From NCBI GenBank assembly GCA_965649765.1, contig OZ287748.1, positions 12,338,001 to 12,402,000 of the forward strand: a stretch of 64,000 nucleotides of DNA. Reading direction: 5' to 3'. The DNA is from Bispira polyomma. Its lineage: Eukaryota. The notes beneath the pieces were generated by a model, which did no database searches, was not told the DNA's origin, and worked only from the letters and a program-made list of their open reading frames with translations. The stretch's first letter is position 1. Each line of letters starts with the position of its first letter. Below, in pieces: positions 52,583 through 62,200 of this stretch. The translations under genes and the position numbers were made by a program.

Positions 52583-53917
52583 ATGTCAGAAATGTATTCA
52601 AAGGTAGTTTCTCTGATTCGTAGTTTAACAGTGGAGCCAGTGACAGTGTTGTTCTTTTTGGCGACCAGTTTCCAAATGCCCACTGATGATGCACTCTGGT
52701 ACAGGAAGGTCTGCCTTCAGCTTTATGATGATGCAGAACTGTGTGCAAACATCAATGCCAATGCAAGCTACGCTGAGATGGAAAAGGAAGTGCAAAGTAT
52801 GAACTCTGAATGGAACTTCTACAGAAATGTTTGTTTCTCCCTACCATCCATGTTGACTACATTTCTCTATGGCTCCTGGAGTGACCGTATCAGCAGGAAG
52901 ATAACCATACTCTTACCACTGTTTGGGGTGTTGGCTGGTTGCTCTGTCAATATAGCATCTGCTATCTTTATTACATCATCCCTTGGTTTTCTCCTGATGT
53001 CTAATGCCTTGCAAGGTATGCTTGGGGGAATGATGACTATGTTGATGTCTACCATGAGCTACATCAGTGACGTCAGTACACCAGAGTCAAGGACACTGCG
53101 GATCTCGGTCCTCTATGCCAGCTCAAACATTGGTTCACTTTTGGCATACACTGTTTCTGGTGTTATATTTGACCATACTGGTTTTACTGTCATGTATTCA
53201 CTTTGTATTGGTGTTGTGCTTCTGAGTATATTCTGTGCTATTTTCTTTCTCAGAGACATTAGACCTACCGATGGTCGTGTGGAAAATACTCAAAATGAAC
53301 ATTTAGGAAAACAACAGGTGGATATTACACCCAGTGACAGCAGAGGAATAAAAGCTAGTTGCAGCAAATTCTGTGACATCAGTCATGCTAAAGAAGCCGT
53401 CTTAGTGACATTTCAGCATCGCGAGAATAATCACAGAATGCATATTGTGGCAGTCCTAATGATTCTGTTGTTTTATATGGTTGGTGGCTGTAAGTACATG
53501 AGTATGTCTTTATATTAATTTTGAAAGTGAATTTAAACAATGAAGTACATCATTGTACAAACACGTATGTGTGTTATATAGGTTGTGCTTTACTTGTGTC
53601 ATCCTAAGTCCAATGCTTGTAGTTATCAGGTGGAGATATTTACCTAAAGCCTGTAGTTTATTATTCATCTGTTGTAGCTACAGCTGTACAATATCTGTAT
53701 TTAAAACATCCACCCCTGGGGTTCAGTCAGACCATGTATGGCTTCTTTGAAGGCTGGCATATTTTCATAAAACTGACAGTCAATGGTCTCTTTGTGCCCG
53801 TGTTAAAGAAGAGGTATAATGTGGCTGACATCCCACTCATGATCATTGCACTGATTTCACACATGATGTCCACAGTGGTACTGGCACTGAGTACATACAC
53901 CTGGATGGTCTTCATGG
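52583..53917 (+). CDS. SLC46/PCFT-like transporter, paralogue 2; exons 1-2 only (52583-53489, 53678-53917)
   Basis: Strong similarity to paralogue 1, with the same phase-1 intron positions; exons 3-6 not recognised in this window. Confidence 0.85.
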
Positions 53918-53996
53918 GTAAGTCAGTCATATATTGTAACTCAAAGTTTAATGTTAGTAGTCTACAAATAAATTTCCAAAACCATAAATTTACCAG

Positions 53997-54705
53997 GGGC
54001 CGTATTCACTAACAGACTCAGCCAAGTCTTAGGCTTAAAGTTAAGACTTTTGTCTTAACTTTTGGGGAAAAAAGACTAAGACAAAAGTCTTAGTCTTAGC
54101 GATATTCACAAAGCAGCTAAGCCTAAGTTTTAGCTTAGCCAAGGGCTTAACTTTAAGACAGGTAGGTAGTGGGCTTAACTTTATAGTAAAAAGTCTTAGG
54201 GTTTTTACACAACTTTTACAAATAAAACATTGTAAATTTGAAGTGCATGACAAACTATAAACATTTAACTATGGTATTATGATATCAAATAGCAAACAAT
54301 CCTTACTGTAACCTGTGATAAGTCAAACAAAAAGTAGTATTATTTCTAACATATTTTGAATCATATAGTCTTTGAAGGGGAAGCCAGTCTTAGGCATTTC
54401 TTAAGTCTAAGTCCAATGAAAGAAAATAATTTCTTATTTAATGATTTTTTTTTTACTCTGGGAAGTTCATATAGCCATAATTAATTATATAGTATATGTG
54501 TATGTGTAAAAATGTAAATAATATTTTGTATAATAGTAAAAAGAACAATTTAAATTTAAGACTTTTGTCTTAACATAGTCTTAGCTAAGTCACCTTTTGT
54601 GAATACCATTTTAAGACAAAACTTAGCTAAGACAAAAGTCTTAGATTTAAGACTGGGCTTAGCCTAAGTTTTGGCTTAGTTTAAGACCGTTAGTGAATAC
54701 GGGCC
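53997..54705. mobile_element. PIF/Harbinger MITE with CAG TSD
   Basis: 17-bp TIR GG(G/C)CCGTATTCACTAAC; CAG at 53994-53996 and 54706-54708; subterminal ttaagac/gtcttag repeats. Confidence 0.88.
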
Positions 54706-54784
54706 CAGAGATATAAAAATAGCATATGCTTAACAATTATCTAAGAGTTTATTTGAACTTGGTGTAGGTGACAGGAGTAAACTG

Positions 54785-54851
54785 ACTGCCTTATATATTA
54801 TTGGTATAAAATATATTTCGAACTCCAGTGGGTGTTCTCATCAGAGGCTGT
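54785..54851 (-). ncRNA. Type I hammerhead ribozyme in the 3' pLTR
   Basis: Exact reverse complement of 56889-56955. Confidence 0.85.
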
Positions 54852-55714
54852 AAAAAATTCACCTTTTTTAAGACTTAAGGTGGAAAAATGGACTCCGCCT
54901 GACTCCGCCTGTTCCGGCGGAGCAACTGGGCGGAGCAGAACTCTAAGTGGGCTCTGACTCAAAGGTATTCATTATAGAGACCATAGAACCTGTCCTGGTG
55001 AATAAGTGATGTCCTGGTTGGGGATATTTGTCCATATAGTGGAGTACACAAAGGTAACATTTTTAATGTGAATTTACCAGAGTGTTTAAAAGTTGTTATG
55101 GTTGCCAGTGGGTTGACCAATGGTGAGCCTCCACATATAGAGGTGGCTCTAGTGGTGATTCCACCAGTAATGGCTGGTGTAGTTACTAAATTCAAATCAT
55201 TAATAACTAGGGTAATATTGGTTGACCAGTAGGGGAGCCTCCACAGTTTGGGGTGGCTCTAATGATCTGTACTAATGGGTTACTGTGTATACTGTTGGGG
55301 TGGGGTAAGACACAGTAACCCTAATTAGTAATGTTCAGCTAAAACGGAAGGGAATGTTATTATAGTTATAGGTAGTTGACTACATAAGTAATATAGCTAC
55401 CAAACTATTGATAGGGTGACACAGGAGGGAATGAACAGAATAAGTATTTCATGTACATATTGGTTTAATACTAATAAAGTATAAACAGGAAAAACAACCT
55501 AAATAGGTGGTGTGAATAATCCACCAATGAATATATATATGCAGTAATATAATTAGAAAGAGATTAGGTATTAACTCTAATAATTAAAACCCTATTAGGG
55601 ATAAAGATACTAATAATTTAATAATTGAAGCTTATAGTATAATGGATCATTCGGTAGTAATCCATCCAATATAGTATGATACACAAAATAATACCTATAT
55701 ATTGAGATATTATC

Positions 55715-56491
55715 CTATAAATCCCTGCATATGTTTTCTAGACACTCTAATAGGTGGAATTCTTTACTACTAGAGTCCAAGGGTAAGTTGCCCCACTGAC
55801 TGAAATTAGTTTGCTGTGGCGGTATAGGGTCCTCTAGATTAAGAGTGTCCCCAAACTGGACAGAAACTGGAAGGGAAAGTCCTAGGTGGTCATGTTCTTT
55901 CAGGTACTTTGTAGTGTAGTAACAAGGTAACTCCTTTCCAGGTGTTGCTGGAGAGGAGGTCATGATAGGATCATAAGCAGTAGGTTGTTCATCTAGCATC
56001 AGCACATGTGGTGAGGTGGCCGCTGAGCAGAGCCTGGTAGGGTTTATCTGGGTAGACTTCTCCCTCATAAAAACAGGTGATGTGTTCACTCCCACATGTG
56101 TGTTCTGTCTATAATCAGGTAGGATTGACAGATCAGTTTGGGTTGAATTGCTCGCCCAGGTGGTATGTGAAATGGTTTCAGTGGTGACGACACAGCCCAT
56201 CAGGTTGTGAGCTGAGGGATTGTGTTGCGCTAAATCCAAGATGTCATCCTGTGAGAACAAATCCGGGGAATAAACTTCTGTGTCAACACAGTTTAAAATG
56301 TTTTTGAACATTACATCTGTTTGGCTGTTTGGGCAGTGAGATGTGTGCCTCTTTAAGTAATCAGGTCTCCTGAAGGCCTTATTACAAAGTGTACAGTGGA
56401 TTCTGTATTCCTGATGTCTTGATTTGAGGTGTCTCTTTAAATTCGACTTCCTGCTGAAGGTGGTGTGACAAATATGGCAAGTAAACCACAT
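55715..56491 (-). CDS. Intronless zinc-finger protein (258 aa; one C2H2 and one C2H2/C2HC finger) inside the PLE
   Basis: CHICHTTFSRKSNLKRHLKSRH and CTLCNKAFRRPDYLKRHTSHC, then a Ser/Thr/Pro-rich tail with STQT/STQI motifs; intact from ATG to stop. Confidence 0.85.
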   Translation of the reverse strand: MWFTCHICHTTFSRKSNLKRHLKSRHQEYRIHCTLCNKAFRRPDYLKRHTSHCPNSQTDVMFKNILNCVDTEVYSPDLFSQDDILDLAQHNPSAHNLMGCVVTTETISHTTWASNSTQTDLSILPDYRQNTHVGVNTSPVFMREKSTQINPTRLCSAATSPHVLMLDEQPTAYDPIMTSSPATPGKELPCYYTTKYLKEHDHLGLSLPVSVQFGDTLNLEDPIPPQQTNFSQWGNLPLDSSSKEFHLLECLENICRDL

Positions 56492-56651
56492 TATTCAGAA
56501 TTAGTTTAATTGCTAATATCAATCACAAAAAATTTTTCTCACAAAAATAATTTTTTAAAAAAGAAAGGTGCCACTTGTATATGGGCAATTCAAATACAGC
56601 TTGTATTGTGTAGTCAGACAAAATATCCAGGTAAGTAAGGTGAATTGCCTG

Positions 56652-56729
56652 GTGACGGTGACGTCATAATGCCCTGATCGTAACGTGATGTTAAATGGTG
56701 CGTTACTTCAGAGTGACGTTGTGACGTCA
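56652..56729. promoter_or_regulatory. Cluster of CRE/ATF sites upstream of the zinc-finger ORF
   Basis: Perfect TGACGTCA at 56659-56666 and 56722-56729, plus TGACG half sites. Confidence 0.45.
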
Positions 56730-56888
56730 ATAGAGCCTGGATAGGTGTTTGAGCTCTGTTGAGTGAAGGGCCCAATATGAGAATATAAAGGGTAAGGGGG
56801 CATTAGGGTAAGGGTGCCAGGTAAGAGTCAGGCGGAGTCAGGCGGAGTCCATCTTTCCACCTTAAGTCTTAAAAAAGGTGAATTTTTT

Positions 56889-56955
56889 ACAGCCTCTGAT
56901 GAGAACACCCACTGGAGTTCGAAATATATTTTATACCAATAATATATAAGGCAGT
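56889..56955 (+). ncRNA. Type I hammerhead ribozyme in the 5' pLTR
   Basis: Stem I acagcct/aggcagt, CUGAUGA 56896-56902, stem II GAAC/GUUC, GAAA 56921-56924, stem III uauauu/aauaua, AUA cleavage triplet ending at 56948. Confidence 0.88.
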
Positions 56956-57022
56956 CAGTTTACTCCTGTCACCTACACCAAGTTCAAATAAACTCTTATA
57001 TTATTCACTTGGGTATATAGTC

Positions 57023-57808
57023 ATGAGTGTAAGTGACACAGCTCTCATCCCAGCACTTAACCACCTAGCAGTGGGAGGAAGTTCAGCTTTCAATACTCCA
57101 GAGACAGGTACACCTATACCTGGCAACAGTTTGAGTAATGAAACTCTGAGCCTACTTGAGGAAGCAGCCAATAAACTTGGAGCCCCACCCAATCCTAAAA
57201 AAGGAATGAAAAGGAGACGCATTGAGTCACCAGCAGATGACTCAAACAACACCAGCAGAAATGAGTACCCTATTGAGGCCAAACCACTCTATCTTAAAGT
57301 GAAAGCCCTCTACAGGAAGAAGATCAACACTGCCACCACAATCCAGGCTATCAAGCTACACCTGAAGGATGGGACATTTCCTGTCCAGACCAACTTTAGG
57401 AGTACCCTCCCGCAGAGCACCAATGATCACTTTAGAATGAAATGGAGTGAAGCTTGTAGCTCATTCAAAAGACAGCTAACCAGCATGCTTTCTGACAAAC
57501 TCAATTCAAGGTACTCAGATTACAGATCTGAGATAACAGCTAAAATGAGTGAACTCAAAGCAATTCTCTCAGAAGCCCAATTTGAGGAGATCAAAGATAG
57601 TCTCCAGTTGAAGTACAAGTCAGCAGCCACAACCAAAATGACTGCAAAACTCAATGCAAAAAATCTACCAACCAAAATAGAACCCCCTGTTAAGAAAACA
57701 AAAAAGGAAAACAGGAGACCTGCACCAAGAACTACCAGGCCAAAAAATGACCTTAAGGAGCTGAGACAGTTACTCACTACTCTCAATAAGAAGTTTTTGA
57801 ATAAATGA
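57023..57808 (+). CDS. PLE upstream ORF (261 aa, basic, helical/coiled-coil, NLS-like KRRR)
   Basis: Intact ORF directly after the 5' pLTR; LKDGTFP...F..KW..ACS..KRQL resembles N-terminal extensions of some EN+ PLEs (from memory, unverified). Confidence 0.7.
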   Translation: MSVSDTALIPALNHLAVGGSSAFNTPETGTPIPGNSLSNETLSLLEEAANKLGAPPNPKKGMKRRRIESPADDSNNTSRNEYPIEAKPLYLKVKALYRKKINTATTIQAIKLHLKDGTFPVQTNFRSTLPQSTNDHFRMKWSEACSSFKRQLTSMLSDKLNSRYSDYRSEITAKMSELKAILSEAQFEEIKDSLQLKYKSAATTKMTAKLNAKNLPTKIEPPVKKTKKENRRPAPRTTRPKNDLKELRQLLTTLNKKFLNK

Positions 57809-57979
57809 ATGATTACTCTTATTCATGTTCTTACTTGTATTTAAAGTATATTGTATATAACTATATTGATTCCATTAAAAACCTGTTATTGTTACTTTGT
57901 TGTTATTACTACCTTGGTTACTAACGGAGCTCAAAATTACACCTCAGTAGCTAGTAAACAGATATCCACTGGTTTAAAG

Positions 57980-60366
57980 ATGGAAAGATCTGATTACTTT
58001 AAAACCTTAAATCTTATCAAGGAGAAGGCTAAAACAGCCCCTCCAGGGATATTACCTCCTGGCAAAACCATGGAGGCCCTGATAGGCCACACTGTAATTA
58101 ATCTATCAGATTCCAATCTCAGTGATGCCCAAATAAGTGCACTTCAAAAAGGCTTAACATTTTGCCCAACCCCAGGCCCACCAAATAAATCAAAAATTTG
58201 GTTGGACTTCAAGGAATTCCATAGGCGTCTTTGCTTAAAATATCATTTTTACAATGACAATGGTCAACTCAGTGATTTGACCCAGTCTGACTCCGAATTG
58301 CTTGAATTTTTGGCATTGAACTTAGAGGAAAGTGAAAATCCCTACAAGGATATTCACCAAAAATTTGTGAATAAAAGCTCATGGAAACCACCAAGAATAC
58401 ACTAATCTCTTAAAATTTTCCAAAGAGCTTTTAAATCCAGCCTCTTAAACAGTAAGACCTCCCACAAAAGATCCAAAAATCTTACCAAGGCACAATACTC
58501 AGGCCTCAAAGAACTTAATGACAACCCAGACATTGTCATCAAGAAGGCAGATAAAGGCTCAGCAGTAGTAGTTATGAACACCACTGATTACCTGAGAGAA
58601 GGGTATAGACAACTCTCAGACACCAATTTCTATACTAAACTGGACTCTGATCCTACTGTAGACATCTCCACCAAAGTGTCTAAAACCCTACACCAAATGA
58701 AACATAAGGGGCTCATTAGTGATAAAAATCTTGAACATTTATTACCAGATAATTGCTCAGAAGGCAGATTTTATCTCCTACCAAAAATTCACAAAAAAGG
58801 TGTGCCAGGCAGACCCATTTGTAGCTCAGTACAGCACCCCACCAGTAGAATCAGTAAGTTTGTGGATGAACATATTAAGAAATATGTACCACAGACAAAA
58901 TCATATATTAGAGATACTCAAGACTTTATCTCTAAACTCAGAGATTTAGGCTAAATACCTGAAGGTGCAATTCTTTGCACTTTAGATGTGTCATCACTCT
59001 ATACCAACATCCCAAATCATGAAGGTATACTAGCAGTGGCTGACCACCTCAGAACAGACCCCACCAAATCACCTATAGCTAGCTTCATACTGGACCTAGT
59101 CAAATTAGTTCTTCACAGTATGAATTTTGAATTTAATGGTGATCATTATATCCAAATAGGAGGTACAGCTATAGGCACATCACTTGCACCCAACTATGCT
59201 AATCTTTTCATGGACAGATTTGAGACAAAAGCACTAAAAGGCTACCACTTAAAACCATTAGTGTGGAAAAGATTTATCGATGACATCTTTATGATTTGGA
59301 CCCATGGTGAAAATGCGTTAATGGAATTCGTGAATTATCTAAATAATATTCACCAAACCATTAAATTCACATATGAATACAGCAGAACCCACATAGATTT
59401 TTTAGACACAACAATCAAATTTAATCCACCCTGTATAACAAACCCACTGATACACACTTGTATCTTCACCACACCTCAGCACACCCAAAAAGTGTTTTGG
59501 ATAAAGGTCCATATGGGCAATACCTCAGACTTAGGCGCATATGCACACTTAATGAGGATTTCACCAGTAATGCCAAGAAACTCACTGAGTACTACCTTGC
59601 TCGTGGTTACCCCATTAAATCCCTCAGGGGTCACTTCAGAAAGGCTAACAAATTCACTCAAGCACAATTACTTGCAGTAAATAAAAGGGAGCAAAATGAC
59701 CCTCCAGTTTTAGTAACTGAATACAACCCAATGAACCCTGATATTAAAGGGCTCATTAAAAATAATTGGAATATTTTCCAACACACAGATGACCTAAAGA
59801 AAATATTCAATGAAAAACCTATCATTGGATTCAAGAGGCTACCTAACCTCAGAGATAAACTTACCTCTGCCAAAATTCTGTACCCTGCAGACAGCTGTGA
59901 ACAGTCATCAATAGACCTCCCACCTGTCTGTACCAGATTGGGCAAGTGCATATACTGCCCCAAACTTAAGAAACTGGATCAGTTTACCAGTTTTCATACA
60001 AAAAAGGTTTATAAGTGTATTAATCTCCCACCAAAACCCCGTCTCACATGTGAATTATATAATTTGATTTACATGATCAACTGTAATCAATGTGGATTAC
60101 AATACATAGGGGAAACCAAGAGGCCATTTAGACAAAGGATGTATGAACACATAAGTGTCAGCAATCCAAAACTACAATCATCCACCCCAGTATCAAGGCA
60201 TTTTAGTCAGAAACAACACTCTGCTAAAAATATGGAGTTTAGTATTGTCCATTGGTTAGGTCTGGATAATAAGGCAAATAGTACAGGGCAACGCAGGCGT
60301 CAGGAACTGTACTATATATGGGCCTTACCAACCCTAACCCCCACTGGGATTATTATATTTGTGTGA
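57980..60366 (+). pseudogene. Penelope RT plus GIY-YIG endonuclease ORF, disrupted
   Basis: VINLS, KGLTFCP, KKADKG, FYLLPKIHK..GRPI, LDVSSLYTNIP, GTAIG..APNYANLFM, RFIDD, CxxxxxCxxC linker, IYMINCNQCGLQYIGET...RMYEH; TAA stops at 58403 and 58952, frameshift near 59420. Confidence 0.93.
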
Positions 60367-60453
60367 TGAGGCCCTCTTACCTGGCACCCTTACCCTAGTG
60401 CCCCCTTACCCTTAACAATTATCTCTTTATTGCATAACACACATTACACAATT

Positions 60454-60490
60454 GTATTCCCCCCACGAATATAACTCGTGGGGGGAATAC
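60454..60490. repeat. Perfect 15-bp-stem hairpin
   Basis: gtattccccccacga-atataac-tcgtggggggaatac. Confidence 0.9.
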
Positions 60491-61073
60491 GAGGTCTTAA
60501 TGTCTTAACATTTTTATCTGCACACTGTTAGTCTCAGTAATAGGAGCAAAGTTAACACTAACCAAATATTTTTTCTTACTGTCACCGGGACTAAGGCCAA
60601 AATCAGAGACCAAAACCCTGAGCTTAAGATAAGGACCTTTTGTAAATACGGCCCAAGGAATTGTAAAATATGTTATTCACCTTTGTCAACCCCTGTTGTA
60701 TATTGGTTAAATTGTTGTTCCGATGATCAGAAGGTCCCGAGTTTAATTCCTGGTACTGACTGTTAGTTTTATTAAGTACTATCTCCAGTGGGAGATTAAA
60801 GATACTTGGGGACATTGATAAATGATCATCCTCAAGCCTCGGCACCCATAGTGGCTGCCCATGAGGAAGCGCATTTGAAATGACCCTACGTTTTATAGAA
60901 GGGCTGTAACAAATGTCACATTTCATTTTATTATTGAATAAGTACTTAATATGAACTTTTGTGAGAAATTAGCCTGTGAGTATTTGTCCAAAGTATTGGG
61001 AATTGAGTATTTTCTGTATATCTAATATCCATACAAATACTTGCTGTAGACCAGTAGTTTACAGCTCATCAAC

Positions 61074-61458: not shown

Positions 61459-61768
61459 CTAAGGTGGAAAAGCCTTGCTAAATAGGTAGGTTTTGAACTT
61501 TTCCCCCAAAGGCATGTGAAAAGGCAGTGTGAATATCACGAGCCAGATTATTTCACACCTCAGGAGCATCATATTGGAAACTATTGTTAAAATGTCTTTT
61601 TGACCTGTGAACCGATCATACAAAGGTAGGTAAACTTGCGTTGACATGTATAGGAAGACAAGTAAGGATTTAAATACTGAAGGAGACCTAAATTAAGATA
61701 TTTATAGACCAAGGTAGCAGTTTTGAATATTACTCTGTACTCAATAGGCAGCCAATCATAAAGAAAGT
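61459..61768 (-). mobile_element. 3' fragment of an L2/CR1-group LINE
   Basis: DWLPIEYRVIFKTATLVYKYLN...KFKTYLFSKAFPP*, homologous to the end of the 13424-15137 element. Confidence 0.8.
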
Positions 61769-61770
61769 TC

Positions 61771-62200
61771 TACCCCCCTTGTACCCCCCCTTGTACCCCC
61801 CCATGTACCCCCCTTGTACCCCCCCTTGTACCCCCCTTGTACCCCCCCCCTGTACCCCCCCTTGTACCCCCCTTGTACCCCCCCCTTGTACCCCCCTTGT
61901 ACCCCCCCTGTACCCCCCCTTGTACCCCCCTTGTACCCCCCCTTGTACCCCCCCATGTCCCCCCCTTGTATCCCCCCCTTGTACCCCCCCCTTGTATCCC
62001 CCCCCTTGTACCCCCCCTTGTACCCCCCCCCTTGTATCCCCCCCTTGTACCCCCATCCCCCGCCCCCTGGATCACCTATGCATCCTACTATATAATGTAC
62101 TTGTAGCCCCCCCCCCTGTACCCCCCCTTGTATCCCCCCCTTGTACCCCCATCCCCCGCCCCCTGGATCACCTATGCATCCTACTATATAATGTACTTGG
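61771..62200. repeat. C-rich (CCCCCCTTGTA)n satellite plus a ~80-bp direct duplication
   Basis: About 25 units of 10-12 bp; the block ...cccatcccccgccccctggatcacctatgcatcctactatataatgtacttg occurs twice. Confidence 0.95.

Follow-up and report, generated by a model that had tools for sequence, protein, structure and literature searches.

The window analysed here, 64,000 nucleotides of contig OZ287748.1 of Bispira polyomma, contains an insertion of a Penelope-like element (PLE) of the Neptune/Nematis type. It is an endonuclease-bearing (EN+) PLE that carries, besides ORF1 and a reverse transcriptase-endonuclease (RT-EN) gene, a third, element-specific open reading frame (ORF) for a two-finger zinc-finger protein. 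This three-ORF architecture is, with high confidence, real, conserved and selected. We favour, at a probability of about 0.5, the reading in which the finger protein is a self-encoded, sequence-specific activator or anti-silencer with its own internal promoter, and in which the window copy arose by head-to-head insertion of two cDNAs started at two fixed sites, A and B.

The insertion is bounded by identical 14-bp target-site duplications (TSDs) and is composed of two arms in opposite orientation (Table 1). The right arm, on the plus strand, consists of a partial pseudo-long terminal repeat (pLTR) with a hammerhead ribozyme, ORF1, the RT-GIY-YIG ORF and a tail of ~45 nt. The left arm runs on the minus strand from 56827 through a 40-nt overlap, a spacer, the 258-aa finger ORF and an AT-rich stretch into a second pLTR/hammerhead. 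The overlap is 98% complementary to 60374-60413, and the 177-nt pLTR arms (54735-54911 and 56829-57005) are likewise inverted. A preliminary sequence-only reading had noted the TSD, the inverted recurrence, the 261-aa ORF1 and the finger ORF, all of which were recovered, and had proposed that undoing the inversion yields a colinear unit with all genes in sense. Such a unit exists. Its 5,461 nt comprise, in order, the hammerhead, ORF1, RT-GIY-YIG, a spacer rich in CpG and cAMP response elements (CREs), the two-finger ORF and the promoter repeats, and the uninverted unit, colinear from the RT through the finger ORF to the pLTR, was found at at least ten other loci (L002, L004-L009, L011, L012 and L014). 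Tandem arrays of it occur in L023/L024, and more than two units stand in tandem on contig C9. The spacer, previously put at ~300 bp, measures 343 nt.

Table 1. Features of the insertion and its borders, in window coordinates
Feature	Position	Strand	Remark
Left TSD, 14 bp	54729-54742	+	same letters as 60411-60424
Inverted pLTR copy, stops at fixed end site A, ~50 nt past hammerhead cleavage site	54743-54911	-	>20 copies share this end
Type I hammerhead ribozyme, left-arm copy	54788-54848	-	98% identical to 56892-56952
Four GGCGGAG repeats, two per strand, just upstream of hammerhead; predicted zinc-finger sites	54893-54935	.	
AT-rich 3' untranslated region of zinc-finger gene / upstream part of pLTR promoter	54936-55714	-	colinear in family copies
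Zinc-finger ORF, 258 aa	55715-56491	-	two N-terminal fingers, disordered tail, acidic-hydrophobic C-terminus
CpG-retaining cluster, candidate internal promoter of zinc-finger gene	56650-56750	-	two CRE palindromes and half sites
40-nt overlap with right end; 5'-truncated end of left-arm cDNA	56788-56827	-	
Two GGCGGAG repeats, truncated start of right arm	56831-56847	+	
Type I hammerhead ribozyme, predicted cleavage after 56948	56892-56952	+	fold and conserved core
ORF1, 261 aa, long helical hairpin / coiled-coil	57023-57808	+	homologous to ORF1 of zinc-finger-less relatives
RT-GIY-YIG ORF, ATG 57980, broken in window copy	57980-60366	+	intact in L034, L035
CX5CX2C linker motif	59929-59958	+	diagnostic of Neptune/Nematis PLEs
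Short 3' tail, stops at fixed end site B	60367-60410	+	~21 copies share this end
Right TSD	60411-60424	+	same letters as left TSD

Pfam searches with the window proteins detected zf-C2H2 (E 7e-10), GIY-YIG (E 1e-6) and RVT_1. The RT and endonuclease domains are thus present as first described, but that description omitted that the frame of the window copy is broken by stops at 58403-58405 and 58952-58954 and by two frame-breaking deletions near 59430-59460; the intact frame of the two family members in Table 1 has 839 codons. The hammerhead proposed for the pLTR folds as a type I three-way junction with the full core, and those of two other species fold alike, with covarying stems of different sequence. 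Rfam returned no hammerhead match in the element, and the z-score of the fold was by itself not significant. ORF1 is predicted to be helical (predicted local distance difference test score, pLDDT, 80) and is homologous to the ORF1 of finger-less relatives (HHalign 93.8%); it had no match in Pfam, Atlas or PDB fold searches.

The element is filed as a variant EN+ PLE because its RT, EN and terminal structure match: a PLE-type RT is followed by a C-terminal GIY-YIG domain, pLTRs result from tandem or inverted copies, the pLTR contains a hammerhead, and a TSD is present. The GIY-YIG domain has the CCHH motif (C-x2-C before YIG and two conserved downstream His). The CX5CX2C linker between RT and EN places the RT with Neptune and Nematis, which are defined by a CX2-5CxxC linker (PMC8557442); this assignment rests on the linker, the RT trees being composed of unnamed relatives. 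The window element resembles Neptune/Nematis in the C-terminal GIY-YIG with CCHH, the linker, the hammerhead, the tandem and inverted insertions, the AT or (TA)n targets and the variable TSD (PMC8557442). It differs from them in its three ORFs, second promoter-like patch and dedicated finger gene, and in having two insertion start sites 2 kb apart where they have a 30-40 nt 'tail'. EN+ PLEs have been reviewed as single-ORF elements (PMC8557442, PMC6431247), whereas the window family and related families have three ORFs. However, a Neptune with two ORFs, the additional one lying upstream, has been reported (PMC12602865), and finger-less relatives also have an ORF1, so that only the third ORF is special, and a separate ORF1 is less unusual than was initially supposed. 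Athena/Terminon was ruled out, since GIY-YIG is present and the ends adjoin AT-rich genomic DNA; those EN-minus PLEs share the multi-ORF structure, a coiled-coil ORF1 and hammerheads, but lack an endonuclease and are telomeric, whereas the window element has GIY-YIG, TSDs and interspersed copies (PMC6431247). Naiad/Chlamys, with N-terminal GIY-YIG and no canonical hammerhead, was also ruled out, the EN here being C-terminal and a hammerhead present. Full-text searches of papers on PLE architecture turned up no such element with a C2H2 gene of its own; Repbase and Dfam lay outside this search, so the three-ORF family may already be catalogued there.

The finger gene recurs in the genome in the same context. 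Protein searches detected relatives of the finger ORF at ~67, 61, 44, 41 and 37% identity, starting 309-331 nt past an endonuclease match and ~0.9 kb before a same-strand ORF1 match. This gap is fixed in families whose EN is 60-98% identical, and one set of relatives forms a four-unit array with a period of ~5,434 nt; these distant families were followed by their coordinates. A more distant PLE family, with an ORF1 40% identical, lies in tandem at 11.73-11.74 Mb of C12 (G000), with a period of ~5,965 nt. About half of the insertion ends lie ~50 nt past the RT stop, without a 3' pLTR, and the unit is a circular permutation. The finger ORF does lie between RT-EN and the hammerhead, as had been stated, but because of this permutation 'first gene' describes it as well as '3' accessory gene'. 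In three DNA runs, contigs spanned the whole element, and no empty-site joint was among the matches listed.

AlphaFold modelled the finger protein as two confident fingers (pLDDT 81-97) followed by a disordered tail. Two fingers had been expected and are present, but finger 2 is of the C2HC type in other family copies. Among 16 independent full-length finger ORFs (92-100% DNA identity), 11 have no internal stop or frameshift. Measured against L039 of the sister subfamily, dN of the finger ORF is ~0.21, its dS is saturated (>2.9), and dN/dS has a bootstrap upper bound of 0.15; in the same pair, ORF1 has a dS of 0.32 and dN/dS of 0.24, and the RT a dS of 0.44 and dN/dS of 0.10. Within the family, pN/pS of the finger ORF is 0.32 for shared against 0.68 for private substitutions (p=0.035). 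Judged by these substitution patterns, the finger ORF is under purifying selection. Given that, in the comparison of L039, L034 and the window copy, its dS is saturated while that of the RT is 0.44, the finger cassette would be far older than the RT divergence and was apparently exchanged between subfamilies by recombination, as seen against one sister sequence.

Relatives with the same gene order were found well beyond this genome. The three-ORF order is shared by 16 elements from other public assemblies, whose RTs are 33-67% identical to that of the window family, and contigs encoding these RT relatives read ORF1, RT-EN, two-finger ORF and hammerhead. L048 (RT 67% identical) is a terminally redundant contig with a unit of 5,363 nt; L055 (65%), L042 (57%), L043 (46%), L044 and L046 (43-44%, L046 being a perfect tandem of 5,664 nt), L047 (41%) and L049 (38%) follow, and a metagenome scan added eight further finger-bearing elements (L060, L065, L067, L071, L082, L112, L116 and L126). 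The samples appear to be mostly marine metagenomes containing animal DNA; a search of viral contigs yielded no relative. In the clade of L049, L065, L067 and L071, both ORF1 and the finger gene appear to be split, perhaps by introns, and the split finger genes were read piece by piece, not joined. In a distant clade (L112, 3022-3302; L126, 1726-2787), the finger ORF begins within the RT-EN stop or right after it, with almost no spacer. Many other RT relatives have no finger gene and place the hammerhead 200-450 nt past the RT stop. In the RT tree, 14 of the 17 finger-bearing rows fall into one 23-row group (SH-aLRT 91) that includes four finger-less rows and has a finger-less sister. Strict monophyly of all 17 finger-bearing elements was rejected by an approximately unbiased (AU) test (p=0.014), run with a simple model on a tblastn-projected alignment from which nine near-duplicate finger-less rows were left out. 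This rejection implies losses, exchanges or repeated gains of the finger gene.

These data bear on whether the finger gene is merely a passenger, a captured host retrogene that hitchhikes without a function in the element. PLEs can carry host genes between their pLTRs (PMC3846280), and no single clean clade unites the finger-bearing elements. However, the gene has kept its position across RTs that are 33-70% identical, purifying selection acts between element lineages, with the dN/dS below 0.15 between subfamilies largely refuting a passenger, and no intron-containing host parent was found in genome protein searches or protein databases. We therefore consider a passenger highly improbable. The narrower proposal of a captured retrogene found only here is rejected, as many families carry the gene. 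Its counterpart in the sequence-only reading, a PLE lineage with a dedicated DNA-binding accessory gene between RT-EN and the pLTR, is supported by the many copies, families and other organisms in which this segment occurs. In protein database searches, neither the tail nor the whole finger protein had a match, and an Atlas search returned generic C2H2 clusters only.

The element is strongly CpG-depleted, and among copies the mutation rate at CpG is 2-4 times that of other C/G positions, a decay that suggests methylation by the host. The spacer before the finger ORF keeps its CpGs. It contains two full CRE palindromes (56659-56666 and 56722-56729) and six CRE half sites against 0.24 expected. 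CRE clusters also precede the finger ORF in L042, L047 and L048, and the spacers of other families are merely CpG-rich. The second promoter-like patch closely precedes the hammerhead, in a place that a TATA box occupies in many relatives. A bacterial promoter scan was discarded as irrelevant.

The repeats in this second patch correspond to the predicted specificity of the fingers. By the standard C2H2 recognition code, the window-family fingers should read GNGGAG. Among 6- and 7-mers of the 150 nt that precede the hammerhead, GCGGAG recurs most often, with four occurrences, two per strand, against 0.43 in shuffles (p=0.0025), and the cluster is kept in the sister subfamily. In L048, an Arg to His change at position -1 of finger 1 turns the prediction into GNGGAT, which is matched four times (shuffle p=0.004); in L042, the predicted NCGG(C/T)T is also matched four times, one palindrome counting twice (shuffle p=0.0005). 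Cross matches among the three motifs number 0-1; finger residues and repeated motif thus change together across these three close families. In L055, obtained once the code had been settled, a looser prediction is matched three times (p=0.19), and L067 fits weakly (p=0.04). A permutation of motifs among 10 families gave p=0.009; a first such test with 8 families was not significant (p=0.11). Independently of the code, repeated 7-mers in these 150 nt are more frequent in finger-bearing elements than in 22 finger-less ones (p=0.001, relatedness ignored); a test for a 'GG-core cluster' did not reach significance (p=0.10). In one finger-less relative (L125, 3711-3861), host-type E-box/CRE repeats stand before the hammerhead, where finger-bearing elements carry family-specific repeats. 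As evidence of self-binding, the match between motif and code is suggestive rather than proof, and we consider it fairly probable that the finger protein binds the promoter repeats upstream of the hammerhead. Of the functions first proposed, autoregulator and anti-silencer are indirectly backed by this match, while a targeting factor is left without support.

Several observations weigh against the favoured reading. The match in the window family was noticed post hoc, after looking at the sequence; the recognition code was fixed before the blind tests. Six distant families (L043, L044, L046, L049, L060 and L065), in most of which the contact residues are atypical, do not fit the code, and the five blind families together were not significant (Fisher p=0.31, permutation p=0.05). 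The families tested are not phylogenetically independent, and several motifs resemble host GC-box, Grainyhead and ETS sites. None of the RNA runs searched contains the element. Finally, the acidic-hydrophobic C-terminus is not universal, being basic in L042, L044 and L046.

Acidic segments with aromatics and leucine are typical of activation domains, and by analogy the last 30 aa, which are net-negative in 12 of 16 finger proteins and often rich in aromatics and leucine, could activate transcription. If the protein instead acted as a repressor or copy-number governor at the same sites, by negative autoregulation, the motif match would look the same, since it gives no sign of the effect; at 35-110 nt ahead of the hammerhead, the sites are next to a TATA-like position, where binding could block initiation, and some members have no acidic tail. 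Against such a repressor, which we regard as distinctly unlikely, stand the acidic/aromatic ends of most members and the finding that finger-bearing families are numerous and recently active. That the finger protein activates the pLTR promoter or protects it from silencing has, in our estimate, an even chance.

In the tail, residues 110-162 contain short motifs (TQT/TSP) that resemble binding sites of the hub protein LC8, with TQT/TQI anchors in favourable flanks, under motif rules taken from PMC6607443. This segment is as conserved as the fingers (dN 0.125 versus 0.11; flanks 0.27). Across 16 tails, Q-anchored TQT-type motifs are mildly enriched (14 versus 8.0, p=0.03), as are variants in a post hoc pattern (7 versus 1.1); exact TQT is not enriched (p=0.30). 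The tail of L126 has two canonical TQT motifs. In its N-terminal C2H2 fingers and disordered tail with several LC8-type motifs, the protein is like ASCIZ/ATMIN (PMC5963919), but it has two fingers only, the likeness is one of architecture rather than sequence homology, and LC8 binding is here a prediction. The anchors, the twofold conservation of residues 110-162 over their flanks and the failure of the code in distant families would also suit a protein acting in retrotransposition, one that binds element DNA or RNA, or couples the ribonucleoprotein to dynein via LC8, or serves in targeting, the repeats then being host-factor sites. However, insertion flanks are AT-rich or (TA)n without a common GC motif, finger residues and motif co-vary in the three close families, and exact TQT motifs are not in excess, so we regard this role as unlikely. 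The generic transcription-factor architecture, together with a cassette exchanged much faster than the RT, as in arms races, might alternatively indicate a protein that manipulates host genes in trans (for example in stress, the germline or silencing), its match to the element's own repeats being incidental. This is very unlikely, given that the element itself contains the family-specific motif clusters, which finger-less relatives have less often.

Under the favoured reading of a self-encoded activator or anti-silencer, the internal promoter that follows the RT stop would be driven by host CREB-type factors. The finger protein, perhaps as a dimer formed through LC8, would then bind the inverted GCGGAG repeats and either activate the pLTR promoter, the source of the hammerhead-ORF1-RT-EN RNA, or protect it from silencing. 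Such a two-step cascade would be analogous to that of foamy viruses, in which an internal promoter yields Tas, a DNA-binding transactivator encoded downstream of pol that acts on the terminal-repeat promoter (PMC8670036, PMC4929722). The proteins are unrelated and the element class is another, and the function here would be parallel only. Another analogy, for anti-silencing, is VANC of Arabidopsis VANDAL, a transposon protein that co-evolves with repeated family-specific motifs in the transposon's own non-coding DNA; VANDAL is a DNA transposon and the fold is unrelated, so anti-silencing in the present element is put forward by comparison (PMC5735166). In keeping with this parallel, the motifs here contain CpG, the dinucleotide that mutates faster in copies. 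Extending the scheme to a taxonomically wide, hitherto undescribed group of 'complex' PLEs, each with its own zinc-finger transactivator or anti-silencer, an internal CRE promoter, fingers and sites co-evolving per family, and cassettes swapped among them, is more tentative, and we put it slightly below even odds.

The inversion of the window copy can be traced to the mode of insertion. Every mapped insertion end lies at site A, ~50 nt past the hammerhead cut, or at site B, ~50 nt past the RT stop, with ~21 ends each, both being CTT(T)A next to an AT-rich target; the loci were picked by queries ending at A or B, but nearly all copies cease to match at these points. A+A, A+B and B+B insertions all occur, mostly in head-to-head arrangement and with inner junctions that vary, and their flanks share no GC motif. 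In the Anolis Poseidon PAc, reverse transcription starts internally at fixed RNA sites, and both target strands are nicked and extended (PMC11167929). The present element resembles it in the fixed internal starts, two-strand reaction, AT-rich targets and tandem templates (Frangieh et al. 2024); however, PAc has one ORF and two adjacent starts downstream of the hammerhead, whereas here one start follows the RT stop, and the sites are 2 kb apart (PMC11167929). By this comparison, RT-EN would nick AT-rich DNA and prime cDNA at site A or B on a multimeric or circular RNA, a template that cDNAs spanning more than one unit would require. In the window copy, one nick would have used A and the other B, and joining of the two cDNAs head to head would explain the inversion. 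The window copy is an A+B product in which one full unit happens to be present.

The insertion probably sits in an intron of a major facilitator superfamily (MFS) transporter gene, exons of which (Pfam MFS_1, E 4e-24) adjoin it at window 52583-54012 and downstream. Directly left of the TSD lies an element with terminal inverted repeats and internal palindromes, similar to a miniature inverted-repeat transposable element (53996-54706), with a related end at ~60600-60655. An imperfect 28-bp hairpin (60441-60503) stands immediately to the right of the insertion, and a C-rich minisatellite with an 11-13-nt repeat occupies 61745-62000.

In earlier descriptions, EN+ PLEs have one ORF and depend entirely on host transcription; a third gene with matching promoter sites offers a directly testable answer to how they may escape silencing: the protein is short, the site cluster spans 45 bp, and natural variants differ in predicted specificity. 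A separate point is the distance of 2 kb between the two priming sites, which concerns how PLEs integrate and whether their template is circular. If the favoured reading is true, foamy-virus Tas and plant VANC would have an equivalent in a non-viral retrotransposon, the families of the element would supply a natural series of two-finger/site pairs, and self-encoded transcriptional control would extend from complex retroviruses and some DNA transposons to telomerase-related retroelements.

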